Made by a program: the position numbers and the translations under genes. This document shows, one piece after another, positions 35,826 through 64,000 of a DNA stretch of 64,000 bases; positions within the stretch are counted from its first letter, which is position 1; every line of letters begins with the position of its first letter. The notes below the pieces were generated by a model. The model was not told where the DNA came from and did no database searches. It worked only from the letters and a program-made list of their open reading frames with translations. The DNA is taken from NCBI GenBank assembly GCA_002104905.1, contig MCFE01000097.1, forward strand, positions 108,650 through 172,649, in the 5' to 3' direction. Origin of the DNA: Basidiobolus meristosporus CBS 931.73 (lineage: Eukaryota; Fungi; Basidiobolomycota).

Positions 35826-38800
35826 ATGAGATTTCAGGAAATCCACATTGAATATTTACAAAATTTAGAGAACATTTCTATCATTCACAATACTTCATGC
35901 ATAAACTTGCTCACTGTCATTGACTTGAGGACAGAAGCATCAGTGGTGATAGCTATTTCAGACATGTCCGACTCTGACGTTGTCACGCTTTACGAGTCCA
36001 ATCTCCTGGAATGCTTGGAAGTTCACAAAGGATTTCTGCATCGGACCGATCTATCCAATTCAGTTGCCAAGCGTAGAAGGTTAGACAGCGATTTGGTGGA
36101 TACAAGCAAGGAGCCTGTCCAGATCGCCTCCTGGCCACTCAAATTTGTCCCGGACTTGACAACAGTTGTTATTCAAGAAGTAGCTCCTTGTAATTATGTA
36201 TCTAAAACCTTCGAAAATTGCCTGCACATTGGGATGTTCGAGATTCTCCTGAATGTTGACGAAACGAAGTGGAATACTTGGTTGTCCACTTTAGGTAGCT
36301 CCTGTGAAGCACTTACTGTACCCGTAGATTTTATTTGTACAGCCAATGGGGAAAATGAAACCCTTGTTTTATATTATACAGATCGGTCTTCTCAAACACA
36401 TGCGCCACTATTAGAGAAACGCATTAGTATAGAGCTTAAGGAAGAGTCGATACTACCCACAGTCCTGCAGGAGGCTGTCAAAGGAGAGCGTTTGGAACTA
36501 CGGATTTCCTTCAGTGTGGACCTCGCGAACTTCAAGGCTGCCCTTTTGTTCAGTCTCTACTTACCCGCTTCTTTGGCGGCTTCAAATAAGTGCCTTCCAC
36601 CTGATATTACAGAGATCCTCAAAAGGCTTCTTTGTAAGAATATTCCATTTTCAGAAACCGAGATTGAAGATACACTTACCTTGTACTCCTACATCCAATC
36701 TTGCAAGAAAAAACACACACAAGAAGGTACGCTGGACACGGATTTGCTGGAGGAACTCAAAGTCACCCTCTACCCATTTCAAGAGCGATCAATCCTGTGG
36801 TTGCTTCAGCGAGAGGGGATTTTTTCTCTTGCTCATGCGATGAAAAGAATCCCTGTCTGGTGGAAAGAAGCACACAATGAAGTCGGTTCGACTCCTTTTC
36901 AGTTCAACGTCTTAACAGGTAGAATTACCAACGATATGTCCTGGGAAGATCAGCACACGGTTTATGCGCCAAGGGGAGGAATCTTGGCTGAGGAGATGGG
37001 GCTGGGAAAATCAATCGAGCTGCTGGCTTTGCATATACTGCATCGGCCTTCAACACAGGAGTTACCAGAGCTCAATAAATTGGCCGAATCCAGGAAGCTC
37101 CTGCCATCCACAGCAACGCTTATCGTCACACCACCAACTATCTCACATCAGTGGATTGCTGAAATTCAAACACACGCCCCTTCTTTACGATGCATTTTAT
37201 TCGAAAAGGATAAGATCCCCACAGAGGAGTTGAGTCAATACGATATCGTAGTAATCAGTTTCGATATCTTGAGCAGGCAGCTTTACCATGCTCAAGAGAC
37301 CTCGTCAAGGTCCCGTAGGTTCCCTAGCAAATACAAGTATTCGGTCAGCCAACTGATACAGATTCTCTGGTGGAGGGTAGTGGTTGATGAGGTCCAGATT
37401 GTCGAATCTCTATCCAGCCGCGCTGCAGAGATGTTGTACCACATACCAAGGATCAACAGCTGGGTGGTTAGCGGGACACCCATCAAGCATAGCCGGAATG
37501 ATTTGATTGTGTTGTTGCGGTTTTTAGGGGTCGAGCCGTTTTCTAGTCACTCGTCGCTATGGAAAACTCTTATGGCAGCCGAGAATTTCGAGCATTTCAT
37601 AGTCCTATTCAGTAGTATAATGCAGCGTACGCTCAAATCACAAATCCAATCTGAGCTCTCGATACCTACCCAGCACACGGACTCGGTTCTTTTGGAGTTT
37701 TCGGATGTTGAGCAGTACTTTTATGAGAGTCTACAGAACTCGTGTGTTGATGAGTTGATCTGGGCCACAACAGTTGAGGAAAAGAAGGCAAAGATGAGAG
37801 AGTGGCTTTACAGATTGAGGCAAACTTGCTGTCACCCCCAAGTCGGCTCCAGGAATAGAAAAGTCTTGGGCGGAACTTTAAGGTCTATCAGTGAGGTACT
37901 GGATTTCATGCTCCAACAAGCCAGAGCGAATTCGCAATCCTTAAATCGAGGGTACATCACGGTCAAGATTAGACGGGCCCAAATCCTTGAAGCGGAAGGA
38001 AAGCTTGAAGATGCACAGCATCTCTACCACGCGGCCTTGAAGGATACTCAAAGCCAGATGGAGATCCTGCGCAAAGAAATGACTGTTTTGACTACAGTTC
38101 CATCCTCCGAAAATGACCAGGCAAATCCAAAATCAACGCAATCACACACAAATGGCCTTCGCGAGGATAGTCACGACGATAATTTTGAGAGCTCACCCCC
38201 AGACTTGCAAAACGAGAGAGAGGATCTGAAGAACGTAAAGCTGTGGCTGCATTTATGGCGAGAAATCGAGCATAGACTTTTCTTTTTCTTGGGGTCGATA
38301 CATTTTAAGTTGGAAAATGAAGCAGAGGAAGCTTCTTATTATCAATTGGCGGAGGAATGCCGGGCAGAGCTATTGAAGCCGCTTTCTCTAGGGTTTCAGT
38401 TGGAGCGGGAAAGGTTCAACAGATTCCTAAACAACATTGACTTCGATCTTTCTACCCCGTCGCCGATTGTTAGCAGTGAATTTACCGGCGGTATCCTTTC
38501 TCATGATCTGCTGGAGCGTATTGAAAATGTGACTGCTGTCCTGAATAGCCAGAATGTGTTGCTAAAAGCTTGTCATGATGCCATTATGAAAATTCTAGTT
38601 TCTAACTTATGGGACGCCAATGAAAATGATGCTAACGGCGAGGAGTTCCAACAATCCCAAGTTCTCCAAGAGGAGGTGGATATATACCAAGATGTGTTCA
38701 CGAGAATCATTCGTGATCGTCGGCACCTAGTTCAGGGAGTTACCTTTGGGTCCAGAGAGTCGGAGATCAAGGCAGGCTTAGAGATATCAGATGCAGCGGC

Positions 38801-40055
38801 CGCGTTTCGAAAACAACATGTCAGGCCACTTGGTCACGAGAATCTGAAGAGCCACCTATCAGAACTCAAACAGATTCTCAACAAGCTCAACATACAAAAA
38901 GAGGAGATTGTCATAGTAGAACACGAATTCCGACGACTCTCCAAGGTGGTGGAGGAATTGTCGGTGATACTGCAACTGTACGAAAGAGAGATTGCCATGT
39001 TTCGTAGATTGTATAATAGCCGTATAGAGTACTATCGCCAGCTACAGAAAATATCGGATGATGTTGTTGAACTACATTGTAGCGATTTCAGCAAAGAATT
39101 GGAGTCATGTAAAGAGAGCGAGCACAGGCTTCAATCCGAGCTTGTGCGGACAGAGGGAAAGCTCAGGTACTTGCTCCATTTGAAAGAAACGACTGGAGAC
39201 GAAAAACAACAGGAGCAAGAGAGATTGTGCCTGATCTGCCAAATGAACTTTGACACGGGGATGATCACATCATGCGGACATATTTACTGCCTGGATTGCT
39301 CGAAAAAATGGTTCCATCAACACTCTAAATGCCCTACATGTAATTCGGTTGTAGAGCGCAGCCATCTGAATAATGTATGTTTCATACCGAAAAACATGGA
39401 GCCACGAGAAAGCCCTGCCTCGAATGAATCTCTGTTGCAGAAGATTAGGCATGTTCATGTTGAAGGGAGCTTTGGAACCAAGATCGACATGCTGATTAGA
39501 CATATCAAGTATATCCGCAAATGTGACCAAGAGGCAGATCGTCCCACTTCGAAAGTAATCATATTCTCTCAATGGGACTCGGTTTTGAACGTAATAGGTG
39601 TTGGCTTAGAGAGAAATGATATCCAATATGTACGACTGGCAGGAAAAGATAAGAACCATACTGCTGTAAAGTTTTCTAACGAAAACAGCATTCAAGTGAT
39701 CCTTTTGAATGCCAAAAGTCAATCCAGCGGGCTGACTCTGATTGCAGCAAATCATGTTTTGTTCTGTGAGCCAATAGTCAATCCTGGGTTGGAATTGCAA
39801 GCTATAAATCGAGTCCACCGAATTGGACAGACTAGAGAAACATACGTCTACTGGTATATCGTGCGTAATACCATCGAAGAAAAGATTTATGAATTGTATC
39901 GGAAGAAGTCCTCGGGTTTTAATGAGCGTTTAAACGATATATCCACTTCAGATATCCAACGTACGCTTCTAGATAAAAGAAGAACCGGATTGGGAGAGAT
40001 CGTTTGTGACGACGATTTGAACTATTTTCTTGACACTTTGGGCATCAGTCTTTGA
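35826..40055 (+). CDS. SNF2-family helicase with RING E3 ligase (SHPRH/Irc20-like)
   Basis: GGILAEEMGLGKS (motif I), WWRVVVDEVQ (II), VSGTPI (III), LRQTCCHPQ, RING CLIC..CGH..C..C..CPTC, FSQW, QAINRVHRIGQ. The true start may be a downstream Met (MSDSDV). Confidence 0.9.
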   Translation: MRFQEIHIEYLQNLENISIIHNTSCINLLTVIDLRTEASVVIAISDMSDSDVVTLYESNLLECLEVHKGFLHRTDLSNSVAKRRRLDSDLVDTSKEPVQIASWPLKFVPDLTTVVIQEVAPCNYVSKTFENCLHIGMFEILLNVDETKWNTWLSTLGSSCEALTVPVDFICTANGENETLVLYYTDRSSQTHAPLLEKRISIELKEESILPTVLQEAVKGERLELRISFSVDLANFKAALLFSLYLPASLAASNKCLPPDITEILKRLLCKNIPFSETEIEDTLTLYSYIQSCKKKHTQEGTLDTDLLEELKVTLYPFQERSILWLLQREGIFSLAHAMKRIPVWWKEAHNEVGSTPFQFNVLTGRITNDMSWEDQHTVYAPRGGILAEEMGLGKSIELLALHILHRPSTQELPELNKLAESRKLLPSTATLIVTPPTISHQWIAEIQTHAPSLRCILFEKDKIPTEELSQYDIVVISFDILSRQLYHAQETSSRSRRFPSKYKYSVSQLIQILWWRVVVDEVQIVESLSSRAAEMLYHIPRINSWVVSGTPIKHSRNDLIVLLRFLGVEPFSSHSSLWKTLMAAENFEHFIVLFSSIMQRTLKSQIQSELSIPTQHTDSVLLEFSDVEQYFYESLQNSCVDELIWATTVEEKKAKMREWLYRLRQTCCHPQVGSRNRKVLGGTLRSISEVLDFMLQQARANSQSLNRGYITVKIRRAQILEAEGKLEDAQHLYHAALKDTQSQMEILRKEMTVLTTVPSSENDQANPKSTQSHTNGLREDSHDDNFESSPPDLQNEREDLKNVKLWLHLWREIEHRLFFFLGSIHFKLENEAEEASYYQLAEECRAELLKPLSLGFQLERERFNRFLNNIDFDLSTPSPIVSSEFTGGILSHDLLERIENVTAVLNSQNVLLKACHDAIMKILVSNLWDANENDANGEEFQQSQVLQEEVDIYQDVFTRIIRDRRHLVQGVTFGSRESEIKAGLEISDAAAAFRKQHVRPLGHENLKSHLSELKQILNKLNIQKEEIVIVEHEFRRLSKVVEELSVILQLYEREIAMFRRLYNSRIEYYRQLQKISDDVVELHCSDFSKELESCKESEHRLQSELVRTEGKLRYLLHLKETTGDEKQQEQERLCLICQMNFDTGMITSCGHIYCLDCSKKWFHQHSKCPTCNSVVERSHLNNVCFIPKNMEPRESPASNESLLQKIRHVHVEGSFGTKIDMLIRHIKYIRKCDQEADRPTSKVIIFSQWDSVLNVIGVGLERNDIQYVRLAGKDKNHTAVKFSNENSIQVILLNAKSQSSGLTLIAANHVLFCEPIVNPGLELQAINRVHRIGQTRETYVYWYIVRNTIEEKIYELYRKKSSGFNERLNDISTSDIQRTLLDKRRTGLGEIVCDDDLNYFLDTLGISL

Positions 40056-44257: not shown

Positions 44258-45307
44258 TCATGGCTCTTGCCTGGGTACAGAGTTCATCCCATTCCTAACA
44301 CGACTAATGCGCTCGTAGACTATCTTGCGAGTGCGATTTAGCGAACCCAGAGGCCGGTGCTCTGGTAGCGAGTGCCAGGGATTGAAAGAGAGAGTCTCAC
44401 CAAGTTTGTTCAGCTCGGTTGTATCGAAATCCTGCTTAGGGATCACGATGGTGGCCACTTCATGGAATGGTGCCTGCTCCTGATCCCATTCGTTCATTGA
44501 GTCTTCGACGCTCATGCCATCAGTGGTTCTGGGTTGCACCATGAACTTCATGGTGACATCACCCTGCTGGAGAGTTGTGCGCATCGCCTCCCGCAGGAAA
44601 TTTGGGCCCGGATGGTCCGGCATATGGTCGACTACATCCGAACTGGGCTTGACGGAGAACTTGACAGCCTGTCTATCGGGACCAACCCCTAGCTGATAGG
44701 GGACGGCTGAGTAATACTGCGTCTGCAGTGGGTTGGATATCTTCCCGAGGTTAAGCTCTCTGGCAAGTAGGGTGCCCTTTAGTCCAAGCGTGAAGGGAAT
44801 GGTCAGTTTGGTCAGCAGATTGCCGCTTGCTTTCTGAATCAATGACAGATAAGTATGGGGATCGTTTAGCAAGAATACAGGGTGGTTGATCATGATGAAA
44901 TCCTGCGATGTGGCATCTCGATCGGTTTCCAAAAGCTTTTGTCCAGGGACGCCAAGCAACTTGATGGCCATTCCACGGCCATCATTGTGGTCATCAGATT
45001 GATTAGGGTCTCCAGAGCCATTCGAAAACCGAATCAGAGCTTGATAGACCTTACCAGGGATAAACACCCCTTTAGCCAATCCATCCGGGATTGACTGGTT
45101 GACTCGAAATTCTGCCTTTACGCAGCCAGTTGCCTTCGCGTGTACATCACGGAGAGCATTACCAGCTTGGTATTGTTCTCGGATGGTCTTTTCAATATGG
45201 TCGGCAATTTGTGTCGTGAGAGTAGCCTCGTCTGGATACAGCTTCTCGCCTAGACCCTCGTCTATTGTGGGAAAGGGTACATCATCCGTCTTGGTAGTAT
45301 TGTCCAT
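44258..45307 (-). CDS. Short heme catalase-like protein (bacterial-type catalase-related family)
   Basis: RDVHAK (distal His), IRFSN, RGMAIK, DFIMINHPVF, LSFNPWHSLPEHRPLGSLNRTRKIVY (RxxxY proximal Tyr); intronless. Confidence 0.9.
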   Translation of the reverse strand: MDNTTKTDDVPFPTIDEGLGEKLYPDEATLTTQIADHIEKTIREQYQAGNALRDVHAKATGCVKAEFRVNQSIPDGLAKGVFIPGKVYQALIRFSNGSGDPNQSDDHNDGRGMAIKLLGVPGQKLLETDRDATSQDFIMINHPVFLLNDPHTYLSLIQKASGNLLTKLTIPFTLGLKGTLLARELNLGKISNPLQTQYYSAVPYQLGVGPDRQAVKFSVKPSSDVVDHMPDHPGPNFLREAMRTTLQQGDVTMKFMVQPRTTDGMSVEDSMNEWDQEQAPFHEVATIVIPKQDFDTTELNKLGETLSFNPWHSLPEHRPLGSLNRTRKIVYERISRVRNGMNSVPRQEP

Positions 45308-52024: not shown

Positions 52025-53968
52025 ATGCAAGAACCTTTGAAATGAACCGCCCTGTTCATTGTTCCTTCATCTCTCACTTGCTTACGCTCAAGTTATGACG
52101 GTCATTTTGTTTTGACCACAGTATCAGAGAACGAAATAAAATACTATAAAAAACTGTTTTTAAAACCGATATTGAAGTTGATTCGAATGCGCTCGAATCT
52201 AACCAGGATTAAGATTAATGTTAAACAAAGAAAAGACGATAGAGTATACAGCATGAGCAGCCTAGACTCATGGTGAATAGTGTGAAATTGTAGCGTGTGT
52301 CCAAACAATTGAGAGGCAATAAATGTAATGGAATAAACAAAAAGGCTGAGAACAAGGATCATAAACAAGAAAGGAGGAGCTACGCCCATGAAATGGTTTT
52401 GTTGTACCGATTATGTCCATCTACAAAATATAATGATGATGGGATTCACAGTACAACTGATATATAAAGCGGATGTATTTTTAAATACATGTGAAAAGTT
52501 ATATGGATTGTACAAATGGGGTAATTAAATCATGGCCACAGAGCAAGCATTCCCCATACGTCGGGAAATCTGTGAGTGAGACATCAACACCGCCATGCGT
52601 TAATGGACTTATACTTGTCATAAGTGCAATTATTGTCTTTTCCAGTGTAGACTATAGGTAAGCTTGTGATTTTATCTTCTGGTGGCCAGTCACCATTGGT
52701 CACAAGTCCTGGGCAAGTCTAGAGGCTGATACATGATAATCCCGAGTTGTGATGCAGTGCTTACGGCAATCTGGCTGTGACTGACTATATTGGTAGTCTG
52801 TGCTAAAGAATTAGATGGTAAGGATATAGCCCAATGCGAGCCGAATTCGATACAAGGAGTCACGTTCCTGTAAGCCACTTACTCAATTCCAGAATGACTC
52901 AATGGTAGATTGCTCCTAGGGCAGAAACCTGAGGTCTAAACTAGCCTGTAACAGCCATTCCATCGACTACCTGTCTTTCGTAGTTGTCAACACATTATTG
53001 GTGGCAGGCACATGTGAATATATTCCAAGAATCCAGGTGATATTCGCAAGCCCAAATAGGCCATAGCATACCCAGGATGCACCCATGAGGCGCAAGTTAT
53101 TTGCTGCTGTGATGTTGCGTGCAACCTATATATTTGATTTTCGCTAAAGGATTAAGTAGATGCTACAACCAGAATACGGGATTACGCATGGTACTCAGAT
53201 GATCTACAGCCTATGAGTCCCCACAAATCAAAGTCAGGCTAGTAATGCTAAAAATAGCGACCCAATTTGTTTTCATAGGTAAGCTGCGGAATTATCTGGC
53301 CCCTAATACCTAAAATCTTGATGCAATCTGGTGATTGTGACCATTCCTAGTATATATGGTTCTACAAGCTGCATAAAACTGGTATTGCACTTATGTGTTT
53401 GCAGAAAAAATGAATTCCCCATTGTAATAAAACTAGGGCTGTAGGCTATTTATTGAAGGCTGTTAAAGAGTAGAAATTGCTCACATAAGTGTTCTAGAGA
53501 CAAATTTGAGTGTTGATGAGTGTGCTTATAGGGGAGTGATAATTGCCAACAGGCCAACTCTTGATTTCACCAACTCATAATTGTTGTAAGAGTCTTGGAG
53601 ATATTGGATGTGACTGGGAGGACAAGTAGATTGTGTGGTTTTCACATAATGATTTATTGAATGTAAAAGTAGTATTTATACTTTTACATTATCTTGGCAT
53701 TACAAACATATAGAGTAGGTTACGAAAGGTCCCAAAAACATGTGTGCAAAGTTTGGGGCTGTTTGGGCAACTTTGAGAATTTTCATGTTCTGGGTACCTG
53801 GTATTTTGGTGAAAATATTCCAAGTAAATCCTAACAAGGAATTTGGTCAGTATTCTCTAGGATTTGAGGATAATGATCTAAGTGACTAAGTTAGGTGAAT
53901 ATTTAGGTGGAATTACAAATTTCGACAACAATAATAAGGTGGCAAAGTGCTTGGAAAAGGTTAGAAGA

Positions 53969-54035
53969 GCAGGGGGTCTGGGGGATGCAGTCCCCTAGAG
54001 AATAAAAGGCAGGGGGTTTGGGGGATGCAATCCCC
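53969..54035. repeat. Pair of GC-rich hairpin direct repeats GCAGGGGGTYTGGGGGATGCARTCCCC, 40 bp period
   Basis: Copies at 53969-53995 and 54009-54035, each with a GGGGA(T)..(A)TCCCC inverted repeat; ~145 bp proximal to the first retroelement. Confidence 0.7.
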
Positions 54036-54180
54036 CATACGGCTCTCATACTCTTTAAATTCCCTTTGGATCACTTTTCTCTCATTCTTGGTTCTGGTCC
54101 CTTAGGGTTACAATTACTCCTCCTAACCCTTAGCACTCTAACCATAAATATTTTTACCCTACAATTGGCACATTGGGTAG

Positions 54181-55479
54181 GGGGGAGACAGTCACCAACA
54201 GGTGAAATCTTTATTTCAGTTGAAACAAAGAAGCCAGTACTACTGTTGTAGCTTTGATACAAGAGTGTGTAGCTGAGGGGAATTTGTAGGTAAGTTAATA
54301 AGAAGTGATGATAGCTCTTCAGTGCTCAAGACACTGTTCAGTGGGAAGGGGGGTAGCAAGAGAGGTAAGAATGACTTGTGAACAACATTAATGAGGGGAA
54401 CGTGATAAGGATTGATATTCATCATAAAGGGAGTGTGCTGCTGCAGATATTGCTGCCAAAGGTCTGTCAAGTACTTCAGGTAGGCCAGCTTGGGTTTTTC
54501 TGACTGCAGAATATAGTGTGCAAACTTCTTGACTTCAGGATCTCCAAGTATAGTTCTCCAGCAGGAGTCAGGTGTTGTGTGGTGTGTTCTCTTCCAGGCC
54601 TTAATCAGTGGGTTGTTGCAGTTGTGAAGTCTGAGGTATAATCTGGTTCTAAGGTAGAGAAGTCTGATCTTATAGGGCATAAACCCAAAAGCACCAAGAA
54701 TATCATGTCTGTAGGGGCATTCAGGCAAATGAGGCACCAAGGAGGTAATGCACCATACTGCAAACTTGTCAAGCTTAGTGCAGTCTCTAGAAGTAAGAGA
54801 GAGAAGTGGTAAGCCAAATTCCAGGACAGGGAAGACAAACTGCTTAAGTAGAAGGAGGCAGCTGGGAGCTGAAGTTGTAGGAGGAGTAACAGCCAGTAGC
54901 TTGTGGAGTGCCTGTCTTGCCAGGATAATTTTCTTCTTCAGGTGTGCTCCAGAGTCTAGTCCAGTAGGAAGGAAAGGAAAGCCAAGATATGTAGCAGAAA
55001 CCTGAGCAGGTAGAGTGGAGTTCTGCAAGTTGATGGGAGAGCCCAAAGGTACTGTCTTTGCAATGGAAAGCTGGAGATTATTCTTCTGCAGATACTGGTG
55101 GATGGTCTGGGAGTCTTGTTGTACATTGGAGGAGGATATTCTGATGTCATCAGCAAAGAGAGTAACCAGGCAGTCAGCTGAGAGTCTTGGGAAATCATTC
55201 AGGAAGATGGCAAACAGTATAGGACCAAGCACAGAGCCTTGAACCACTCCATTAGGAACTGAGAACACAGCTGATTGCTCACTTGGGTGCAGAATTCTTG
55301 CTTGTGGATCCAGAAACAGAGACCTGACAAGGAGGGTGAGAGAGGTAGTGGAGAAGCATTGCAACTTGGACCAAAGCAGATTTCTGTCAACTGAATCAAA
55401 GGCCTTAGTAATATCAAACAGAACAGAGGGATACTTGCACTGGAGAGAGTGATCTTGGCTAAGTATGACTGCATATTCC
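54181..55479 (-). mobile_element. Family A telomeric LINE, 5'-truncated copy (3' part of RT plus 3' UTR)
   Basis: Near-identical to 58311-59609; frame intact (GVVQGSVLGP, LFADD); breaks off at ...GCATATTCC into TAGGGTTAGGG. Confidence 0.95.
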
Positions 55480-55502
55480 TAGGGTTAGGGTTAGGGTTAG
55501 GG
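55480..55502 (+). repeat. Inter-element telomeric tract, ~4 x TTAGGG
   Basis: TAGGG TTAGGG TTAGGG TTAGGG read directly. Confidence 0.95.
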
Positions 55503-55680
55503 GGAGGAAAGTCACCAAGTGGTGAAATCTTTATTTACTTATAACAAGTATCTAAAGGGTTAGGGGGAGGAAAGTCACCAAGTGGTGAAATCTTTATTTA
55601 CTTATGACAAGTATCTAAAGAAGCCAAGTTAATCTGAAGTTATTCCTAGAAAGCTAGGTCTGAGAGATATCTTCCTGGTA
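55503..55680 (-). mobile_element. Two stacked 3'-end fragments of family C (55503-55557 and ~55563-55680)
   Basis: Both start GGGGAGGAAAGTCACCAAGTGGTGAAATCTTTATTTAC and match 58066-58300; joined by GGTTAGGG. Confidence 0.85.
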
Positions 55681-55772
55681 GGGGGGATGATCATCACCAA
55701 AGGGTGAAATCTTTATTTAAATAATAAATAAAGAAGCCAAGTTTGAATATGAATATCTGAGATGCAGGAAGC

Positions 55773-56573
55773 CTACAAGATAAACTTGGACTTTGCTGTA
55801 TCCCAAATATCCTGAATATCAAAGTCTAGAGGAGAGTGTAGCAAGACTGCTTGTTCACTGTAGTATTTCTTGAGGAAGTTGGTGACTTGAAGGGAAGGAG
55901 AGTTTTTCAACAAGCTGGTAAATCTTTTCAGGAGTTCTTTTTCCAGAGAGAATGGCACAAAGAGTGGAATGTCCAAATGATGTCTGAATATATGCTCTGA
56001 GAGCTCCCAATCCAGCATATTTTTGACTTCTTCTGTAAAATCTTCAACAATATCTTTGTCAAGAATAACTTCCAAGAGATCCCTGGCAATGTACTGAATG
56101 TTAATAATCTTAGGCATATGAATACCTAGCTCCTTGAGGTAGTTACTTTGTTCTGATATTGGGAGATATCCTGCATTTCTGAAATAGCAAACTGCCCAGT
56201 TGGCAGTAGGAGGAGTATCAGGGCTGACAGGGAATCTTCTTCTGGCTTTAGCGTGCACTGGCTTAGGAGACTGTCTTGATGGAAGGGCAGCTGGTTTTGG
56301 ATGAGCTTGAAGTGCTTGGGAGTAGGTTTGAGTACAAGTAGTAGAAATTCCTGGTTGCTGAGAATTTTCAGATTGACTGGATGAAGAGCTAATTGAGGGG
56401 TTGCAAGGTAAGGAAGAAGCTGACAGAGAAGTGGAGAGGGCTGGGTGAAGTTCAGAAAGGGTTTTGAAATGAATTTGGATCTGAGATTTCAACATTGAGT
56501 TTTCAGCTTCAAGAAGAGAAACTCTTTGTTCAAGGTAAGAAGTCTGTAAAGAGTGAAAGTTGGGTAAAGACAT
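55773..56573 (-). CDS. B1 ORF1/Gag-like protein, 266 aa
   Basis: Coiled coil LEAENSMLK, TYSQAL motif, C-terminal domain PPTANWAVCYF..PISE..KIINI..LEVILDK aligning with LINE ORF1. Confidence 0.85.
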   Translation of the reverse strand: MSLPNFHSLQTSYLEQRVSLLEAENSMLKSQIQIHFKTLSELHPALSTSLSASSLPCNPSISSSSSQSENSQQPGISTTCTQTYSQALQAHPKPAALPSRQSPKPVHAKARRRFPVSPDTPPTANWAVCYFRNAGYLPISEQSNYLKELGIHMPKIINIQYIARDLLEVILDKDIVEDFTEEVKNMLDWELSEHIFRHHLDIPLFVPFSLEKELLKRFTSLLKNSPSLQVTNFLKKYYSEQAVLLHSPLDFDIQDIWDTAKSKFIL

Positions 56574-56620
56574 GGAAGTAGTAAATAAGAAGAAAGGAGT
56601 AGTTGGGGTGGGAGGGTGGG

Positions 56621-56958
56621 AAAATAGGTAAGAAGAAAAGAGAGGAAAGATCTGAAATTGAAAATCTCAGAATTTATAGATGGATGGACAAGGGTAGAGG
56701 ATTGATTAATCCAGGGTTAGGGAAAAATAGGTAAGAAGAAAAGAGAGGAAAGATCTGAAATTGAAAATCTCAGAATTTATAGATGGATGGACAAGGGTAG
56801 AGGATTGATTAATCCAGGGTTAGGGAAAAATAGGTAAGAAGAAAAGAAAGGAAAGATCTGAAATTGAAAATCTCAGAATTTATAGATGGATGGACAAGGG
56901 TAGAGGATTGATTAATCCAGGGTTAGGGAAAAATAGGTAAGAAGAAAAGAGAGGAAAG
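56621..56958 (+). repeat. 103-bp tandem repeat, ~3.3 copies, each ending CAGGGTTAGGG
   Basis: AAAATAGGTAAGAAGAAAAG starts at 56621, 56724, 56827 and 56930. Confidence 0.95.
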
Positions 56959-56970
56959 GGTTAGGGGTTA

Positions 56971-57498
56971 GGGGAGGGAAAGTCACCAAGGTAGGTGAAA
57001 TCTTTATTTGATTTCAGACAAGTCTAACTACAAATAAAGAAGCCAGCTGGGAATAGAAGATTCCCAAAGTAAATACTAAGTTGAATATGAATAAATCTAA
57101 GCTAAAGTTAAGGCAGTATCCCAGAGTACACTGGAGTTCAGGTTCATGGGGGAGTGAAGTAGATAAGCTTGAGAGATATAATAATCTTTGAGGAAGTGGG
57201 TAACAGCAGGTGAAGGGGAGTTTTTGATAAGTGAAGTGAATCTTGAGAGCAGAGATTCCTCTAATGAGAAGGTCTTGTAAACTGGAGAATCAGGAAACTC
57301 TTTAAAGGCATGGTCAGTAGGTTCCCAGTAAAGCTGGTCAGAGACATTTTGAGAGAACTCTTTAGCAATACTTTTGTCAAGTACTACCTCCAGAGTGTGA
57401 TGGTTGATAAATCTCATGTTGACAATCTTGGATAAGTTGTAGCCTTGTTGCTTGAGATACATCCTATGCTCAGATATAGGAATAAACTCCACATTGGC
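56971..57498 (-). mobile_element. Family B2 element, 5'-truncated copy
   Basis: Near-identical to 62912-63438; breaks off at ...CACATTGGC into TTAGGGGG. Confidence 0.9.
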
Positions 57499-57501
57499 TT
57501 A

Positions 57502-58045
57502 GGGGGATGATCATCACCAAAGGGTGAAATCTTTATTTAAATAATAAATAAAGAAGCCAAGTTTGCATATGAATATCTGAGATGGAGGAAGCCTACAAGA
57601 TAAACTTGGACTTTGCTGTATCCCAAATATCCTCAATATCAAAGTCTAGAGGAGAGTGTAGCAAGACTGCTTGTTCACTGTAGTATTTCTTGAGGAAGTT
57701 TGTGACTTGAAGGGAAGGAGAGTTTTTCAACAAGCTGGTAAATCTTTTCAGGAGTTCTTTTTCCAGAGAGAATGGCACAAAGAGTGGAATGTCCAAATGA
57801 TGTCTGAATATATGCTCTGAGAGCTCCCAATCCAGCATATTTTTGACTTCTTCTGTAAAATCTTCAACAATATCTTTGTCAAGAATAACTTCCAAGAGAT
57901 CCCTGGCAATGTACTGAATGTTAATAATCTTGGGCATATGAATACCTAGGTCCTTGAGGTAGTTTCTTTGTTCTGATATTGGGAGATATCCAGCATTTCT
58001 GAAATAGCAAACTGCCCAGTTGGCAGTAGGAGGAGTATCAGGGCT
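57502..58045 (-). mobile_element. Family B1 element, 5'-truncated copy
   Basis: Near-identical to 55681-56225; breaks off at ...TCAGGGCT into TAGGG. Confidence 0.9.
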
Positions 58046-58067
58046 TAGGGTTAGGGTTAGGGTAGGG
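58045..58067 (+). repeat. Inter-element telomeric tract
   Basis: TTAGGG TTAGGG TTAGGG TAGGG. Confidence 0.95.
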
Positions 58068-58300
58068 GGAGGAAAGTCACCAAGTGGTGAAATCTTTATT
58101 TACTTATGACAAGTATCTAAAGAAGCCAAGTTAATCAGAAGTTATTCCTAGAAAGCTAGGTCTGAGAGATATCTTCCTGGTAAGCCAGGTCTGAGAGTTG
58201 AGAAGCTGAGTGGTACTATATTTCCTAGTTAGCTAGGTCTGAGAGAGGTTTCCTGGAAAGCCAGGCCTGAGAAGTGAGAATCTGAATATATCTGAGCTAA
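58066..58300 (-). mobile_element. Family C element, longest copy (~235 bp, no ORF seen, internal AGCTAGGTCTGAGAGA..TTCCTGGWAAGCCAGG repeats)
   Basis: Shares the 3' module; two shorter copies at 55503-55680. Confidence 0.8.
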
Positions 58301-58370
58301 GTTAGGTTAGGGGGGGAGACAGTCACCAACAGGTGAAATCTTTATTTCAGTTGAAACAAAGAAGCCAGCG

Positions 58371-61139
58371 CTACTGTTGTAGCTTTGATACAAGAGTGTG
58401 TAGCTGTGGGGAATTTGTAGGTAAGTTAATAAGAAGTGATGATAGTTCTTCAGTGCTCAAGACACTGTTCAGTGGGAAGGGGGGTAGCAAGAGAGGTAAG
58501 AATGACTTGTGAACAACATTAATGAGGGGAATGTGATAAGGATTGATATCCATCATAAAGGGAGTGTGCTGCTGCAGATATTGCTGCCAAAGGTCTGTCA
58601 AGTACTTCAGGTAGGCCAGCTTGGGTTTTTCTGACTGCAGAATAAATTCAGCAAACTTCTTGACTTCAGGATCTCCAAGTATGGTTCTCCAGCAGGAGCC
58701 AGGTGTAGTGTGGTGTGTTATCTTCCAGGCCTTAATCAGTGGGTTGTTGCAGTTGTGAAGTCTTAGGTATAATCTGGTTCTAAGGTAGAGAAGTCTGATC
58801 TTATAGGGCATAAACCCAAAAGCACCAAGAATAGCATGTCTGTAGGGGCATTCAGGCAAATGAGGCACCAAGGAGGTAATGCACCATACTGCAAACTTGT
58901 CAAGCTTAGTGCAGTCTCTAGAAGTAAGAGAGAGAAGTGGTAAGCCAAATTCCAGGACAGGGAAGACAAACTGCTTGAGTAGAAGGAGGCAGCTGGGAGC
59001 TGAAGTTGTAGGAGGAGTAACAGCCAGTAGCTTGTGGAGTGCCTGTCTTGCTAGGATAATTCTCTTGTTCAGGTGTGCTCCAGAGTCTAGTCCAGTAGGA
59101 AGGAAAGGGAAGCCAAGATATGTAGCAGAAACCTGAGCAGGTAGAGTGGAGTTCTCCAAGTTGATGGGAGTGCCCAAAGGTACTGTCTTTGCAATGGAAA
59201 GCTGGAGATTATTCTTCTGCAGATACTGGTGGATGGTCTGGGAGTCTTGTTGCACATTGGAGGAGGATATTCTGATGTCATCAGCAAAGAGAGTAACCAG
59301 GCAGTCAGCTGAGAGTCTTGGGAAATCATTCAGGAAGATGGCAAACAGTATAGGACCAAGCACAGAGCCTTGAACCACTCCATTAGGAACTGAGAACACA
59401 GCTGATTGCTCACTTGGGTGCAGAATTCTTGCTTGTGGATCCAGAAACAGAGACCTGACAAGGAGGGTGAGAGAGGTACTGGAGAAGCATTGCAACTTGG
59501 ACCAAAGCAGATTTCTGTCAACTGAATCAAAGGCCTTAGTAATATCAAACAGAACTGAGGGATACTTGCACTGGAGAGAGTGATCTTGGCTAAGTATGAC
59601 TGCATATTCCAAGGAGAGGCCAGGAACAAAGCCAAACTGTGCAGGATGAAACTTGAGGGAGTCAGAGTAGAGCTCCTGAGCAAGCAGAAGCTCAAACACC
59701 TTTCTGCAGGTGGGCAGCAGAGATATTGGTCTGTAGGAGCTAGGATCCAGGTGCTTTCCTTTACCCTTGTACAGTGGCAGAACATTTGCAAAGGACCATT
59801 CCTCAGGAGTAGAAAGCTGGGCTGAGCATTGCTGAAACAGTGGAAGCAGAAGTGCAGACATGGCCTTGGTACTAGTCTTCAGAAGCTCATAGGAGATTGT
59901 GTCCACACCTGGAGCAGTAGAGTTGGGAAGCCTCTTGAGCACATTATGGATTCTCCCTTGATCAAGTGCAAGTGGGATGGGCAGAGTCTTGAAGTCAGGA
60001 TGAAAGCCAGGAGTTGAGTACTGCTTTGTAGAGAAGAAGATGTTAGCCAGCTGTTCTGTTGAAGGTAACTTCCTGGAAGAGGGCCTCATTGCCCTGTAGA
60101 GTCTTGATACTGTTCTTGTTATAGAGTTGGAAGATTGCAGAGGCAAGGAACTCATAATATGATCCCAGAGCTGAGTATGCAGAGTGTGGTGAATTGCCTT
60201 GGAGTGGTGTATTGCTGTCAGGAGGAGTTTCTCTGTTTTTGGGTTAGGGAAACTCAGGTAGCTTTGTTGCAGGGCTGAAACAATGGATTCCCATTCTCTT
60301 GAGGTAACAGCAGTAGTCTTGCATGGCAGTGAGAGGGAGGCAGACACCAGAATCAGATGCTTCACAAAGAGCCAGGCATAGTTGAGATCATCTGGCAGAG
60401 AAAGTAGCAAACTGGCAAGCTTCAAGTAGTTCCCAAAGTCTTTCTTCTGATTCTTGGTAGCTTTGTGGGTGAGCACAGTAAGTTTTGGCAGCTTCTTCTT
60501 CACAACTGGTTGCATAGAAAGGGACCAGGCTGGGTGGTCAGAGGCTCTTAAGGATCCTAGCTCAGCTCCAGAGAATTGCATAACTTCATTCACAAAGTAG
60601 AGGGCAGCAGCAGAAGGGCAGATCCAGTCAACACATCTTTTCTCAGATTGAGCACCTAGTGCTAGCAGATGGCTTTCTCTCAGGAAGTTCAGTAGGAATG
60701 TAGACCTTGGCTTCATTCTTGCAGTCAGAGTAGTCTTGTTCTCAGGATGGGGAATGTTGAGATCACCAAGCAAGATAATAGGTGTTGATATAGATTGCTG
60801 GTATTGCTGAACTTTCTGGCATATAACTTGCACTTCCTGAAGGGCAAGACTTGGAGGCAGATAGCAGAGCACCAGACTGATAGTTGGCAACTGGAGAGCA
60901 GCACAGTAAGGGGAGTAAAGAGGAACACAGAGCTGAGGAGTATTGATGGTAGAAGAGATGAAGCAGATAGAGGAGGTATTCTTTGTTCTAGGAGTAGAAA
61001 AGCAATATAGATTAGTCAAAAGTATAGAGGGTAGCTGGACATCAATCAAACACAGGAGGGAAAATCTTGAAAGAAGTCTCTCTAGAGTTGGTCTTGATGG
61101 CTGTATGCTGTTGCAGTTAAGCAACAGAACTTCAGGTAG
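58371..61139 (-). CDS. LINE ORF2: APE-type endonuclease + reverse transcriptase (no AUG at its start)
   Basis: APE motifs LLLNCN, CYLPP, GDLN, VDWI, SDH; RT motifs APGVD, LYKGKG..YRPISLL, QFGF, DITKAFDSV, GVVQGSVLGP, LFADD, TYLG. Confidence 0.95.
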   Translation of the reverse strand, partial: LPEVLLLNCNSIQPSRPTLERLLSRFSLLCLIDVQLPSILLTNLYCFSTPRTKNTSSICFISSTINTPQLCVPLYSPYCAALQLPTISLVLCYLPPSLALQEVQVICQKVQQYQQSISTPIILLGDLNIPHPENKTTLTARMKPRSTFLLNFLRESHLLALGAQSEKRCVDWICPSAAALYFVNEVMQFSGAELGSLRASDHPAWSLSMQPVVKKKLPKLTVLTHKATKNQKKDFGNYLKLASLLLSLPDDLNYAWLFVKHLILVSASLSLPCKTTAVTSREWESIVSALQQSYLSFPNPKTEKLLLTAIHHSKAIHHTLHTQLWDHIMSSLPLQSSNSITRTVSRLYRAMRPSSRKLPSTEQLANIFFSTKQYSTPGFHPDFKTLPIPLALDQGRIHNVLKRLPNSTAPGVDTISYELLKTSTKAMSALLLPLFQQCSAQLSTPEEWSFANVLPLYKGKGKHLDPSSYRPISLLPTCRKVFELLLAQELYSDSLKFHPAQFGFVPGLSLEYAVILSQDHSLQCKYPSVLFDITKAFDSVDRNLLWSKLQCFSSTSLTLLVRSLFLDPQARILHPSEQSAVFSVPNGVVQGSVLGPILFAIFLNDFPRLSADCLVTLFADDIRISSSNVQQDSQTIHQYLQKNNLQLSIAKTVPLGTPINLENSTLPAQVSATYLGFPFLPTGLDSGAHLNKRIILARQALHKLLAVTPPTTSAPSCLLLLKQFVFPVLEFGLPLLSLTSRDCTKLDKFAVWCITSLVPHLPECPYRHAILGAFGFMPYKIRLLYLRTRLYLRLHNCNNPLIKAWKITHHTTPGSCWRTILGDPEVKKFAEFILQSEKPKLAYLKYLTDLWQQYLQQHTPFMMDINPYHIPLINVVHKSFLPLLLPPFPLNSVLSTEELSSLLINLPTNSPQLHTLVSKLQQ

Positions 61140-62648
61140 TCAGGCAGAGATTGTAGCTTCTTCAGAGGCAGCATTGACAATGTGACCTGCAGAGTCCCAG
61201 AGCTCTTCAAATGGTGCATCACTTAAGTCAGCAAGGAGGGAAATGGCATGGTTCTTGAGGAAGTATGCCACATCATAGGAGGGGGCTTGTCTCTTGATGG
61301 CAGCAAAGAAAGACAGAATGGCAACATGGGCTGGAGGCTTGTTGAACAGTAGAGAGTCAGAGGATTCAGATTCTTCAGGCACTATCTTGAAGTCAGTTTT
61401 CAGCCAGTTAAGGTTCTTTGCCACAAAGGCAACAAATGGGTCAGCAATGTTTTGGTCTAGGATAACCTCCAGAATCTTCCCTTTTCTCCAGGCCAGGTTG
61501 ACAATTCTTGAGAGCTGAATATTGCATGCCTTGAGTGCTTTCCTGATGTTGGAGATGGGAGTCCAGGGAACTTGCTTCAAGTACACCACAGTCCAGGCAG
61601 AAGCTGGAGGTAGGTTTGCTGGGGGCTTGTAAGTCCTTCTGTGTGGCAATGGAGCTGCAGTAGTCAGATTGGAGTCCACATTCTCAGTAGAGGGTTTTCT
61701 TGATGTGTCTTGCTGAATGGTACTGGAGCTGGATGTGCTGATAATTCTTGCTAGAACCTTGCCTGCATAAGTCTGAGGTATAGCTGAGGTGACTGTAGAG
61801 GTGGTGGCAGCTGGTGCAGGTGGAGAGGCAGAAACTGAAGCAGGAACTGAGGTCACTTGGGAGAAGGCAGTAGCAGCAGGTTTTCTGGGAGGAACAGAGT
61901 TCACTATCCAGCTGTTCTGTAAAACACTGGAGTAGCTTTTCTGTGGAACAGGATCTTGCTCTTGAACAGGAACAGAAGCAGGAGGCTGTGGCTGGGCAGT
62001 AGTGGTAAGGCAGTGGCACTCCAAGGAAGCTTTTTGCAAGGCATCTCTGGCAGTTTTCAAGGCAGTATTGGCTTCATTCTTGAGCTTCTTGCATTGGGCA
62101 TCCAGTCTCTTGTTTTCAATAGCCAGGGCAGTATTGGCAGCCTCTAAATCAGCAATTCTCTTCTCAATTGCAAGGAATCTCTGAAGAAATGCATCAGTAG
62201 CAGTGCTGGCATCTGGGAGAGCAGTGGCAGGAATAGACTCCATTGACAGTGGGCTTCTTGGAGGCAAGGAAAGTGGACTGGCAGATTCAGGCACAAAAGG
62301 AGATATCCTGGCAGGAGGAGAAGGAGTATCCAAGGCAGTAACAGAGGCAATTCTTGTTGGTGAAGCAGCAGCAGGGGAGGCAAGCCTGTTCAGAAACTGG
62401 ACAGGAGAGAGTGCTTGAGGAGAGGGAGTCTTCAGCTTGCCAAGCATGTCTTCCATCAGAGTGATACCAATATTCCTGGTGCATTTGCAGAGAAAAGTAA
62501 GCTTCCTAAGTCTGCCAGCTCTTCCATTTCTTCTGATAGTTCCTTTGTTTCCACAGTTGGGGCAAGAAATCTTCTTGACAGACTTGTCAAAGCAATCAAG
62601 AACCTTCCTTTCAGGTGTAGTGGGCTCCTGTTGAGGTTTTGGTGGCAT
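61140..62648 (-). CDS. LINE ORF1, 502 aa (N-terminal Cys4 zinc ribbon, coiled coil, C-terminal domain shared with B1/B2)
   Basis: ATG 62648; CPNC-x21-CKC; IADLEAANTALAIENKRL; PPASAWTVVYL..PISN..RIVNL..LEVILDQ. Confidence 0.9.
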   Translation of the reverse strand: MPPKPQQEPTTPERKVLDCFDKSVKKISCPNCGNKGTIRRNGRAGRLRKLTFLCKCTRNIGITLMEDMLGKLKTPSPQALSPVQFLNRLASPAAASPTRIASVTALDTPSPPARISPFVPESASPLSLPPRSPLSMESIPATALPDASTATDAFLQRFLAIEKRIADLEAANTALAIENKRLDAQCKKLKNEANTALKTARDALQKASLECHCLTTTAQPQPPASVPVQEQDPVPQKSYSSVLQNSWIVNSVPPRKPAATAFSQVTSVPASVSASPPAPAATTSTVTSAIPQTYAGKVLARIISTSSSSTIQQDTSRKPSTENVDSNLTTAAPLPHRRTYKPPANLPPASAWTVVYLKQVPWTPISNIRKALKACNIQLSRIVNLAWRKGKILEVILDQNIADPFVAFVAKNLNWLKTDFKIVPEESESSDSLLFNKPPAHVAILSFFAAIKRQAPSYDVAYFLKNHAISLLADLSDAPFEELWDSAGHIVNAASEEATISA

Positions 62649-62717
62649 ATCCAGAGTTTCAGCTTCAAATTTAAATTTTTGAGATTTTTGGGTGATTTTT
62701 GATGGGCGGGATCAAAA

Positions 62718-62911
62718 TTAGGGTTAGGGTTGCGCGCTGTGACTGCTTTTTACGATCGCAAGGTCAGAACCTAGGAAAAAATAAAAATAGTTAGTAAAGG
62801 TGATTTAATGGATGGATGGATGGATTCGGAGTCAGATTCAATCAAAAAATCAAATCGTTGACTAATTTAAAGAGGAAAAAATAAAAATAGTTAGTAAAGG
62901 GTTTAGGGTTA
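62718..62911. promoter_or_regulatory. Putative promoter/5' segment: TTAGGGTTAGGGTT, CpG cluster, 28-bp direct repeat at 100-bp spacing
   Basis: AGGAAAAAATAAAAATAGTTAGTAAAGG at 62773-62800 and 62873-62900; the only CpG-rich patch in the array. Confidence 0.5.
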
Positions 62912-63802
62912 GGGGGAGGGAAAGTCACCAAGGTAGGTGAAATCTTTATTTGAATGCAGACAAGTCTAACTACAAATAAAGAAGCCAGCAGGGAATAGAA
63001 GATTCCCAAAGTAAATACTAAGTTGAATATGAATAAATCTAAGCTAAAGTTAAGGCAGTATCCCAGAGTACACTGGAGTTCAGGTTCATGGGGGAGTGAA
63101 GTAGATAAGCTTGAGAGATATAATAATCTTTGAGGAAGTGGGTAACAGCAGGTGAAGAGGAGTTTTTGATAAGTGAAGTGAATCTTGAGAGCAGAGATTC
63201 CTCCAATGAGAAGGTCTTGTAAACTGGAGAATCAGGAAACTCTTTAAAGGCATGGTCAGTAGGTTCCCAGTAAAACTGGTCAGAGACATTTTGAGAGAAC
63301 TCTTTAGCAATACTTTTGTCAAGTACTACCTCCAGAGTGTGATTGTTGATAAATCTCATGTTAACAATCTTGGATAAATTGTAACCTTGTTGCTTGAGAT
63401 ACATCCTATGCTCAGATATAGGAATGAACTCCACATTGGCAAAGTAGCAGACAGTCCAGTCAGTAGCAGGAGGTAAATCAGAAGTGGCAGGAAACTTTCT
63501 TTTAGTCTTGGGAGGAGCAGCAGAATGTCTTGAGGAAGCAGGAACAGGCTTTTTGACAGCTTCAGAGTAGGAAAAGTGAGCAGGAGCAGATGATTCTTGG
63601 GGAGTCTTGTTGACAGGAACAGCTGGCAGAGAGACAATAGATTCTTGCAGATCAGAAAAGGCAGAAAACAGCTTTTGAACTTGTTTCTTGAGTAAAGCAT
63701 TTTCAGCTTCAACAAGTGCAAGCCTTTCCTCAAGGAAGGAAATCTGAAGGGAATGGAGTGAAGGCATAAGAAATAAGAAGAAGAGGGTAAGGTGGGGTGG
63801 GT
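62912..63802 (-). mobile_element. Family B2 ORF1-only element, terminal copy capped directly by the telomere
   Basis: Shared 3' module; intact 242-aa ORF; 5' UTR similar to B1 up to GGGGTGGGTGGG, then TTAGGG repeats. Confidence 0.9.
63039..63767 (-). CDS. B2 ORF1/Gag-like protein, 242 aa
   Basis: VEAENALLK, SYSEAV, PPATDWTVCYF..PISE..KIVNM..LEVVLDK; paralog of B1 and of LINE ORF1. Confidence 0.85.
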   Translation of the reverse strand: MPSLHSLQISFLEERLALVEAENALLKKQVQKLFSAFSDLQESIVSLPAVPVNKTPQESSAPAHFSYSEAVKKPVPASSRHSAAPPKTKRKFPATSDLPPATDWTVCYFANVEFIPISEHRMYLKQQGYNLSKIVNMRFINNHTLEVVLDKSIAKEFSQNVSDQFYWEPTDHAFKEFPDSPVYKTFSLEESLLSRFTSLIKNSSSPAVTHFLKDYYISQAYLLHSPMNLNSSVLWDTALTLA

Positions 63803-64000
63803 GGGTTAGGGTTAGGGTTAGGGTTAGGGTTAGGGTTAGGGTTAGGGTTAGGGTTAGGGTTAGGGTTAGGGTTAGGGTTAGGGTTAGGGTTAGGGTTAGG
63901 GTTAGGGTTAGGGTTAGGGTTAGGGTTAGGGTTAGGGTTAGGGTTAGGGTTAGGGTTAGGGTTAGGGTTAGGGTTAGGGTTAGGGTTAGGGTTAGGTTAG
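63803..64000 (+). repeat. Telomere (TTAGGG)n, ~33 units
   Basis: Repeats run to the window end with the G-rich strand 5'->3' outward; one TTAGG variant at the very end. Confidence 0.99.

Follow-up and report, generated by a model that had tools for sequence, protein, structure and literature searches.

A probable telomere-specific LINE and its dependants at a chromosome end of the fungus Basidiobolus meristosporus

Introduction

Flies, silkworm and beetles, Giardia, Chlorella, rotifers and a small number of ascomycete and basidiomycete fungi carry retrotransposons specialised for telomeres, and every independent case shows what the life of a selfish element at a chromosome end requires. The GilM and GilT elements of Giardia have an endonuclease that is not known to be of the apurinic/apyrimidinic (AP) endonuclease (APE) type. 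In the so-called stringent pairs of long and short interspersed nuclear elements (LINEs and SINEs), such as UnaL2/UnaSINE1 of eel, a common 3' stem-loop is thought to be recognised by the reverse transcriptase (RT), and a short repeat tail takes the place of poly(A). The present work deals with an array of elements at one end of a stretch of 64,000 nucleotides (hereafter the window) from Basidiobolus meristosporus CBS 931.73 (GenBank assembly GCA_002104905.1, contig MCFE01000097.1, positions 108,650 to 172,649 of the forward strand), a fungus placed in Zoopagomycota. The array is made of four families, designated A, B1, B2 and C, which on their sequences appear to be a real, apparently undescribed and probably active telomere-specific LINE accompanied by its dependants.

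The fungal telomeric LINEs described so far are of the restriction-enzyme-like (REL) endonuclease type, and neither the reviews nor the 2025 FoTeR paper report a fungal LINE of APE type (PMC12857005, PMC10088271, PMC5537684). This agrees with the background given in a first-pass annotation of the window, made from the letters and their translations. The same annotation had not recognised the system as a described one, and no description of telomere elements in Basidiobolus or Zoopagomycota was found in the searchable literature, Repbase not being covered.

A chromosome end occupied by four element families

The right edge of the window is a right-hand chromosome end, with the 3' end of the G-rich strand (G-strand) pointing outward. 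The terminal tract (63806-64000, plus strand) consists of about 32 perfect TTAGGG units, in keeping with the earlier claim of a fungal host with TTAGGG telomeres; the 12-mer TTAGGGTTAGGG occurs 36 times in the window against 0 expected, and 30 of the 36 occurrences make up this run. The last 9.6 kb just inside the tract (54180-63805) hold the element array. Direct reading, a repeat finder, self-BLAST and a covariance model of the common 3' end agreed on its layout, which is the head-to-tail stack of four families in the order first annotated, with nine copies in place of the ten that had been counted: A (truncated), C (fragment), C (truncated), B1, B2 (truncated), B1 (truncated), C, A (full), B2, telomere. 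All nine copies lie on the minus strand with their 5' ends distal, again as annotated (two-sided binomial p about 0.004).

On the proximal side the array opens with a 5'-truncated A copy (54180-55479) comprising the 3' 1.3 kb of the element, that is, the C-terminal part of the RT and the 3' module (78 bits with the covariance model), and 97.9% identical to 58311-59614 without indels. Telomere units (TAGGGTTAGGGTTAGGGTTA, 55480-55499, plus strand) lie between this copy and a 58-bp C fragment (55500-55557), which holds the 3' module only (partial match, 49 bits) and looks like an abortive copy. A 5'-truncated C copy of 118 bp (55563-55680; 98% identical to 58060-58182) is followed by a full B1 (55681-56958), with its 3' module, an ORF1-only gene (ORF, open reading frame; 55773-56573, 266 amino acids) and 5' monomers, and then by 5'-truncated copies of B2 (56971-57498; 96.4% identical to the full B2; 65 bits) and B1 (57502-58045; 98.5% identical to 55682-56225; 83 bits). 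The longest C copy (58065-58304, about 240 bp) is non-coding and consists of the 3' module and a body of about 160 bp, with internal short repeats. Beyond it come the full A element of 4.59 kb (58310-62899), imperfect telomere units that separate the 5' end of A from the 3' end of B2 (GGTTTAGGGTTA, 62900-62911, plus strand) and a full B2 (62912-63805), which carries an ORF1-only gene (63039-63767, 242 amino acids) and whose C-rich 5' end abuts the terminal tract.

Paired copies in the window are 96.4-98.5% identical, without indels (self-BLAST). The covariance model gave nine strong matches in the window, none of them on the plus strand or outside the array, and positions 1-54100 returned no match to any of the four families with blastn or tblastn, leaving the 54 kb proximal to the array free of the interior copies that the first-pass annotation had proposed to look for. 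Association with telomeres was assessed over this 54-kb interior and a handful of other contig ends, and elements stood at or beside chromosome ends in two species.

The elements are also marked by their composition. Their sense strand is poor in G (14.5-19%, versus 21-25% in host genes) and their proteins are poor in Gly; runs of GGG occur at 15 per kb on the telomeric G-strand side versus 2.7 per kb on the opposite strand (5.6-fold), and at about 7.7 per kb on both strands of the window interior.

A structured 3' module common to all families

The four families, and their relatives elsewhere, all end in one 80-nt module made of two hairpins and a C-run. In the first helix the box TGGCTTCTTT pairs with AAATAAAGA over a variable loop to give a long AU stem, and this pairing places an apparent AAUAAA signal inside a 12-bp stem. 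Downstream lie a TCACC/GGTGA hairpin and, after a short spacer, 4-9 consecutive C. Both helices are predicted by RNAalifold, with 17 base pairs, 96% of cells paired and invariant blocks, and compensatory changes are seen in each of them (C-G to A-U in helix 1, U-A to A-U in helix 2). Covariation in the module lay above 500 of 500 shuffles and every slid control, and covariance-model scores ranged from 65 to 83 bits across A, B1, B2 and C. That one structured 3' end is common to four families points to a single RT shared by them. A metagenome scan with a 20-base pattern taken from the module returned 120 stretches, 0 of them with the full module (C-run plus TA), and these were discarded as chance matches.

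Family A, the putative autonomous element

Only family A carries RT and APE domains, as had been annotated. The RT is recognised as RVT_1 (E = 2.7e-25), and the best solved relative of ORF2 is human L1 ORF2p (E = 5e-13 with the single sequence; E = 2e-62 with a mixed profile, end to end over APE and RT). Alignment with canonical LINE ORF2s shows the full set of APE catalytic residues (N, Y, GDxN, D and SDH), and none of them varies among six lineages of the family, whose identity is only 41-76%. An AlphaFold2 model of the APE domain, for which the underlying alignment took in canonical LINE sequences, reached a predicted local distance difference test score (pLDDT) of 86 and a predicted template modelling score of 0.80, and Foldseek matched it to ExoA, the TRAS1 endonuclease, APE1 and the L1 endonuclease at E of about 1e-9. 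Modelling confirms for the N-terminal domain of ORF2 a predicted AP-endonuclease fold, divergent but conserved. No REL motif (CCHC ... RHD ... E ... PD) was found in the C-terminal third of ORF2, and no Myb-like domain was found in family A by a Pfam scan. The assignment of family A as an autonomous LINE with APE and RT is supported by these sequence features.

In the full A copy, ORF2 (58371-61139) and ORF1 (61140-62648, 502 amino acids) share one frame and are split by a single UGA (61140-61142; context 61095-61175). The context GCC UGA CUN is kept in five lineages, namely in the window and, among related loci from other contigs and assemblies (given here by their L numbers), at about 2112 in L001, 2669 in L002, 1449 in L008 and 1666 in L010, and the APE domain starts no more than 10 codons after this stop. 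Such conservation of the UGA suggests programmed stop-codon readthrough that would produce an ORF1-ORF2 fusion, an arrangement believed to be unusual among LINEs. The ORF1 protein combines a zinc ribbon (CxxC...CxC) at its N-terminus with a coiled coil and a C-terminal domain (an RNA recognition motif (RRM)-like part and a helical C-terminus). It showed neither CCHC zinc knuckles nor a Pfam Gag match, the Pfam results for ORF1, B1 and B2 being coiled-coil noise only.

The 5' untranslated region (UTR) of A extends to 62899 and is homologous to those of L010, L003 and L135. Tandem 5' UTR monomers of about 100 bp with a ATCCATCCATC motif are present in the full B1 (56618-56958; 103 bp in 3.3 copies), in A (62773-62899), in L011 (1-210), in L003 (1-60) and in L135 (4440-4560). 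They are conserved across families and between B. meristosporus and B. ranarum, and probably represent a promoter, reminiscent of the monomers of mouse L1. The telomere-like CCCTAACCC found in the B1 monomers is part of the repeat unit and was not added by telomerase. At 62716-62735 the A 5' UTR contains GCGCGC and an internal AACCCTAACCCTAA, at a place where the homologous UTRs of L010 and L003 run continuous; this GCGCGC/AACCCTAACCCTAA stretch may reflect an internal break that was healed, or else a switch of template.

All A-type ORF2s also hold an internal CCCTAACCC at a conserved Phe-Pro-Asn-Pro motif, which requires particular synonymous codons (window 60240-60248, reading GGGTTAGGG on the plus strand; 3011 in L001, 3568 in L002, 1867 in L007, 2562 in L010 and 2606 in L133). 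A 5'-truncated copy in L002 (from 5636) starts exactly at this ORF2-internal CCCTAACCC, which may serve as a seed to re-cap eroded ends.

Probable dependants B1, B2 and C

The B1 and B2 proteins align to the coiled coil and C-terminal domain of A ORF1 at 23-29% identity, and on these alignments B1 and B2 are read as old ORF1-only lineages and not as recent deletion derivatives. The model of the B1-type ORF1 protein (pLDDT 77) combines a long helix with a disordered linker, a beta-alpha-beta-beta-alpha-beta domain and a helical bundle; no significant structural match was found in the PDB (best E 0.016), for which reason the label RRM-like refers to the order of strands and helices only. Exact-sequence look-ups of the window ORF1 and B1 proteins returned no record because the genes are uncalled in public annotation. 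Family C (about 240 bp) has no ORF and no match to transfer RNAs or Rfam, which likewise account for nothing else in the window. The sequence data support the proposal, already made in the first-pass annotation, of an autonomous APE LINE with ORF1-only and non-coding dependants: B1, B2 and C would be mobilised in trans by A, and the common 3' module is the signature expected of such a relationship.

Related elements in other contigs and assemblies

Elements with matching junction logic and orientation were found in a second B. meristosporus contig, in three B. ranarum contigs and in several ENA/Logan assemblies. Among 5.8 billion clustered proteins, ORF2 has five close relatives (48-80% identity), all from ENA or Logan assemblies, and beyond these come generic APE and RT-bearing ORF2s at no more than 31% identity, several of them from aphids. 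An ORF1 profile had 32 matches among 1.84 billion representatives, annotated B. ranarum proteins included; the distant match L012, annotated as YacG-like, was dropped on account of its unrelated gene context.

The arrays are varied. Three elements stand head to tail in L002, two distinct autonomous lineages are in tandem in L135, L003 looks like a tandem of one lineage, and L008 has an A-type element next to a short non-coding one, beyond which the DNA is unique. At least three autonomous lineages, with ORF2s 48-62% identical to that of the window, co-occur per sample and are adjacent in arrays (L002, L004, L007 and L135; Logan ERR14042384, ERR14127404 and ERR14127509). Truncation points and neighbours differ at every locus and assembly examined (NCBI B. 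ranarum, independent ENA and Logan), and the identical array at all ends that the first-pass annotation had considered gave way to a different array at each locus.

Three of these loci are informative about how elements are attached. In B. ranarum JASJQH010002740.1 (L011), a B1-type element with the same 5' monomers and 3' module ends in CCCCCCCTAACC, which is followed by unique DNA; a subtilase gene lies 600 bp away, and the contig breaks within the 5' monomers. In another B. ranarum locus (L134, 602-680), a B-type element is followed by a 14-nt copy of its own last bases (GCTTTTCATCCCCCC) and then by unique DNA, which looks like an abortive first round of reverse transcription and subsequent re-priming. 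The third, B. meristosporus MCFE01000428.1 (L133), holds a second 5'-truncated A copy (98.8% identical) that lies 1.1 kb from the contig end and retains an intact ORF2; the 3' end of this copy meets unique DNA across TAA, and (CCCTAA)2.5 stands at its 5' side.

The DNA distal to the L133 copy is a subtelomeric repeat, 94% identical to the sequence immediately proximal to the window array, and it extends beyond the window breakpoint. Since the repeat continues in L133 past this point, the window end is read as a terminal deletion within the repeat, and the window array looks as if it began at a break inside the subtelomeric repeat that was healed by an A element. L133, in turn, looks like an old end that gained subtelomeric DNA afterwards. 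In the window the repeat (53574-54175, unstranded) is 92-94% identical to two pieces of L133 (877-1108 and 6343-6708), which are arranged differently there. Two direct repeats of about 37 bp, each with a GGGGGATGCA(g/a)TCCCC palindrome, occur just proximal to the array (53960-54040) and are present in L133 too. L133 also has a diverged 3' module (8170-8250, 34 bits; second hairpin CCACT/AGTGG) in the same orientation, 3.6 kb proximal to its A copy, which is either an older relic or another family. A weak module match just proximal to the window array (53527-53592, 19 bits) was unconvincing when inspected.

Junctions and the mode of attachment

At nine of nine 3' ends in the window the C-run is followed by TA(A), in phase with CCCTAA, and the nine copies show no A-runs or poly(A) at their 3' ends, as had been noted. 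The spacers between copies, annotated at first as 1-4 TTAGGG units, actually measure 0-3.5 units, and several are imperfect (TAACCCC, TAAACC, TACCC), unlike the perfect terminal tract. The C|B1 junction (55680/55681) has zero telomere units, the truncated C end abutting the C-run of B1; the B2|B1 junction has TTA only; and the proximal-most truncated A meets unique or subtelomeric DNA through TACCCAA only. Over the window and related loci, CCCTAA-phase sequence stands directly after the C-run, for no more than 3.5 units, in 21 of 21 junctions read, and at five loci (the window, L133, L008, L011 and L134) no more than about one repeat unit separates the 3' end from unique DNA. At the 5' side, elements are either complete or cut at arbitrary points and then followed by telomere units; complete 5' ends are C-rich, so that the 3' end of the complementary DNA (cDNA) is G-rich. 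Very short, seemingly abortive copies exist: one of 58 bp in the array and one of 14 nt in L134. Target-site duplications are not scorable within telomere repeats.

Several features are signs of recent activity and of selection. The ORFs are intact, copies are 96-99% identical without indels, and synonymous and non-synonymous differences stand at about 1:1 versus about 1:3 expected if unconstrained. The APE domain, the ORF1 domains and the 3' RNA structure are conserved over deep lineages, down to 41-48% identity.

We consider it probable that these are a telomere-specific, stringent-type APE LINE of the genus Basidiobolus and its dependants, primed on G-strand 3' ends alongside telomerase. 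In the proposed pathway, ORF2 would be made by readthrough as an ORF1-ORF2 fusion, and the ORF2 protein would recognise the 3' module on its own RNA or on that of B1, B2 or C (stringent 3'-end recognition). The C-run/UAA tail would then pair with a G-strand 3'-OH ending in ...TTA or ...GGG, at an exposed chromosome end or at an APE nick, and the cDNA would lengthen the G-strand, from which the fixed orientation with the 5' end distal would follow. Telomerase would add TTAGGG to the G-rich end of this cDNA. The array would grow between the subtelomere and the terminal tract as such rounds recur, interrupted by abortive copying or by erosion of the end, and the first element at an end would heal a broken, non-telomeric end.

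The most serious rival, to which we give a minor share of credence, is a parasite in the manner of TRAS/SART, whose APE would nick duplex (TTAGGG)n at one position and insert by ordinary target-primed reverse transcription, so that copies would accumulate towards the base of the tract and contribute nothing to the healing or extension of ends. It would be consistent with the constraint on the APE domain in six lineages, with the constant phase of the 3' junctions (TA and then a G-run at nine of nine window junctions) and with the long telomerase-type tract distal to the array. However, elements inserted at random among some 30 units should have long telomere stretches on their proximal side, whereas all 21 junctions are short, several of their units being imperfect; two junctions are without a telomere unit and abut non-telomeric sequence; and the proximal-most elements at the five loci named above reach unique DNA across about one unit or less. 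Priming at or near the end is favoured over such internal insertion, though not by much: the short imperfect spacers, the zero-unit junctions, the abortive micro-copies and the attachment to non-telomeric breaks argue for free or broken ends as primers.

A number of observations weigh against this telomere-end reading. The strong conservation of the APE domain argues that a nick, and not a free end, is the usual primer. Within that domain, the metal-binding Glu of APE enzymes is Asp in all family members, the Pfam APE matches to ORF2 are weak and under cut-off, and neither a family-only APE profile nor the APE domain alone reaches a solved structure by sequence. The L133 copy is subterminal, subtelomeric DNA that belongs to no element extending for at least 1.1 kb on its distal side, and the short interstitial tracts could come from later shrinkage of longer ones. 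We infer a host telomerase from the perfect TTAGGG tract only.

It is very improbable that the array is an inert subtelomeric block, that is, old LINE debris spread by recombination or break-induced replication, or a repeat mis-assembled beside a telomere. Subtelomeric sequence adjoining the array is indeed common to different chromosome ends, and one A copy, that of L133, is internalised behind such sequence. Debris of this kind, however, is hard to reconcile with intact ORFs in copies that are nearly identical and free of indels, with a single orientation and junctions that are all in telomere phase, with truncation points and neighbours that vary among all loci and assemblies examined, or with the deep conservation of the 3' RNA structure, the APE domain and the ORF1 domains. 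Equally improbable is an untargeted APE LINE of the ordinary dispersed kind, with SINE-like partners and no more than a tolerance of subtelomeres, for although sampling covered about 64 kb of genome and a few short contigs, and short-read contigs break at repeats, the four families are absent from the 54 kb adjoining the array, every junction read has telomere-phase sequence right after the C-run with no poly(A), and the 3' end of the elements is shaped to continue into telomere repeats.

Host genes in the window

Near the end, at 18838-22509, 33495-35498, 35826-40055 and 44258-45307, the window also contains long, intron-free host genes for a three-NDK-domain protein, a PPR protein and a SNF2-RING helicase, and a 349-amino-acid ORF; the catalase match of the last is partial only (profile positions 45-140 of 383). 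The window ORF for eIF3d is likewise intron-free; it is 100% identical to the protein of B. meristosporus CBS 931.73, and the next best matches, from B. ranarum, reach 81-83%.

Comparison with known telomere-element systems

Judged feature by feature, the Basidiobolus family would function like each of the known telomere-element systems but fails a defining feature of each. With HeT-A/TART/TAHRE of Drosophila it shares terminal head-to-tail arrays with 5' ends distal, an autonomous RT-bearing element with ORF1-only partners, variable 5' truncation, attachment to broken non-telomeric ends and a G-rich strand bias that is continued (PMC5537684, PMC10088271); strand bias of this kind has been noted for HeT-A/TART and other telomeric elements (PMC10088271). 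The fly elements, however, have oligo(A) junctions in a host without telomerase repeats and a long 3' UTR with poly(A), whereas Basidiobolus has telomere units at the junctions and a conserved structured 3' module, and its host keeps a TTAGGG tract. The Basidiobolus ORF1 is without zinc knuckles, ORF1 and ORF2 lie in one frame across a UGA, and a non-coding SINE-like member is present. HeT-A/TART/TAHRE belong to the Jockey clade, and the nearest ORF2s to that of Basidiobolus A, beyond its close relatives, are unnamed APE and RT-bearing ones at no more than 31% identity. The description of the array as HeT-A/TART-like in the first-pass annotation therefore stands for orientation and ORF1-only partners and falls for kinship, the telomere-unit junctions and the ORF1 without zinc knuckles leaving an analogy only.

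A bolder version of the same comparison, which we regard as possible but doubtful, would have Basidiobolus independently evolve a Drosophila-like division of labour at its ends with telomerase kept. Several APE LINE lineages with Gag-only and SINE-like partners would then use exposed G-strand ends as direct primers, by means of a structured RNA 3' end complementary to the telomere, and would routinely heal and lengthen ends, telomerase only capping their additions. If true, this would be a living example of the postulated intermediate between telomerase-only and retrotransposon-only telomeres.

The TRAS/SART elements of Bombyx and Tribolium (R1 clade) are likewise APE LINEs at the telomeric repeat of hosts with telomerase-type repeats, with a fixed junction phase, and the modelled Basidiobolus APE has the TRAS1 endonuclease among its closest structural matches (E of 1e-9). 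Unlike them, the Basidiobolus elements are without poly(A), CCHC knuckles and a Myb-like domain, and they form a compact array at the base of the tract, 0-3.5 units apart, in one orientation and with non-autonomous partners, instead of being scattered in long tracts. As to insertion at a fixed position, the 3' phase is constant in Basidiobolus, yet two junctions are without a telomere unit and proximal elements abut unique DNA.

Among fungi, MoTeR1/MoTeR2 of Pyricularia oryzae, FoTeR of Fusarium oxysporum and Cnl1 of Cryptococcus (CRE/SLACS group) have in common with Basidiobolus a TTAGGG host, head-to-tail arrays, short interstitial tracts, 5' tandem repeats, autonomous and non-autonomous members and the lack of poly(A) (PMC12857005, PMC7367193). 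They have a single ORF with a C-terminal REL endonuclease (PMC12857005), whereas the Basidiobolus element has an N-terminal APE, a separate ORF1 and no REL motif. The telomeric Penelope-like elements (Athena of rotifers, Coprina of basidiomycetes) resemble it in a 3' end that runs into the reverse-complement telomere repeat, in orientation, in 5' truncation and in coexistence with telomerase (PMC10088271, citing Gladyshev and Arkhipova 2007), but they are endonuclease-deficient and have a Penelope-type RT, in contrast with the LINE-type RT (nearest to L1 ORF2p) and conserved APE of Basidiobolus. Giardia GilM/GilT form unidirectional head-to-tail arrays between the subtelomere and the terminal repeats, some copies being 5'-truncated (PMC5537684); they belong to another host kingdom, and ORF1-only or non-coding partners are unreported there. 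As in UnaL2/UnaSINE1, autonomous and non-autonomous members share a conserved structured 3' end, but in Basidiobolus the tail is the telomere repeat and the partners include protein-coding ORF1-only members.

Basidiobolus is culturable, so that priming at a free end versus a nick, and help or harm to telomere maintenance, are directly testable. By analogy, its elements are an independent fungal parallel to the telomere elements of flies and silkworm, and they would combine features that are otherwise split among systems: an APE LINE in a fungus, a structured 3' end that is complementary to the telomere and has no poly(A), dependants with that same end that are Gag-only or non-coding, a G-strand-like bias in composition and coexistence with TTAGGG telomeres.

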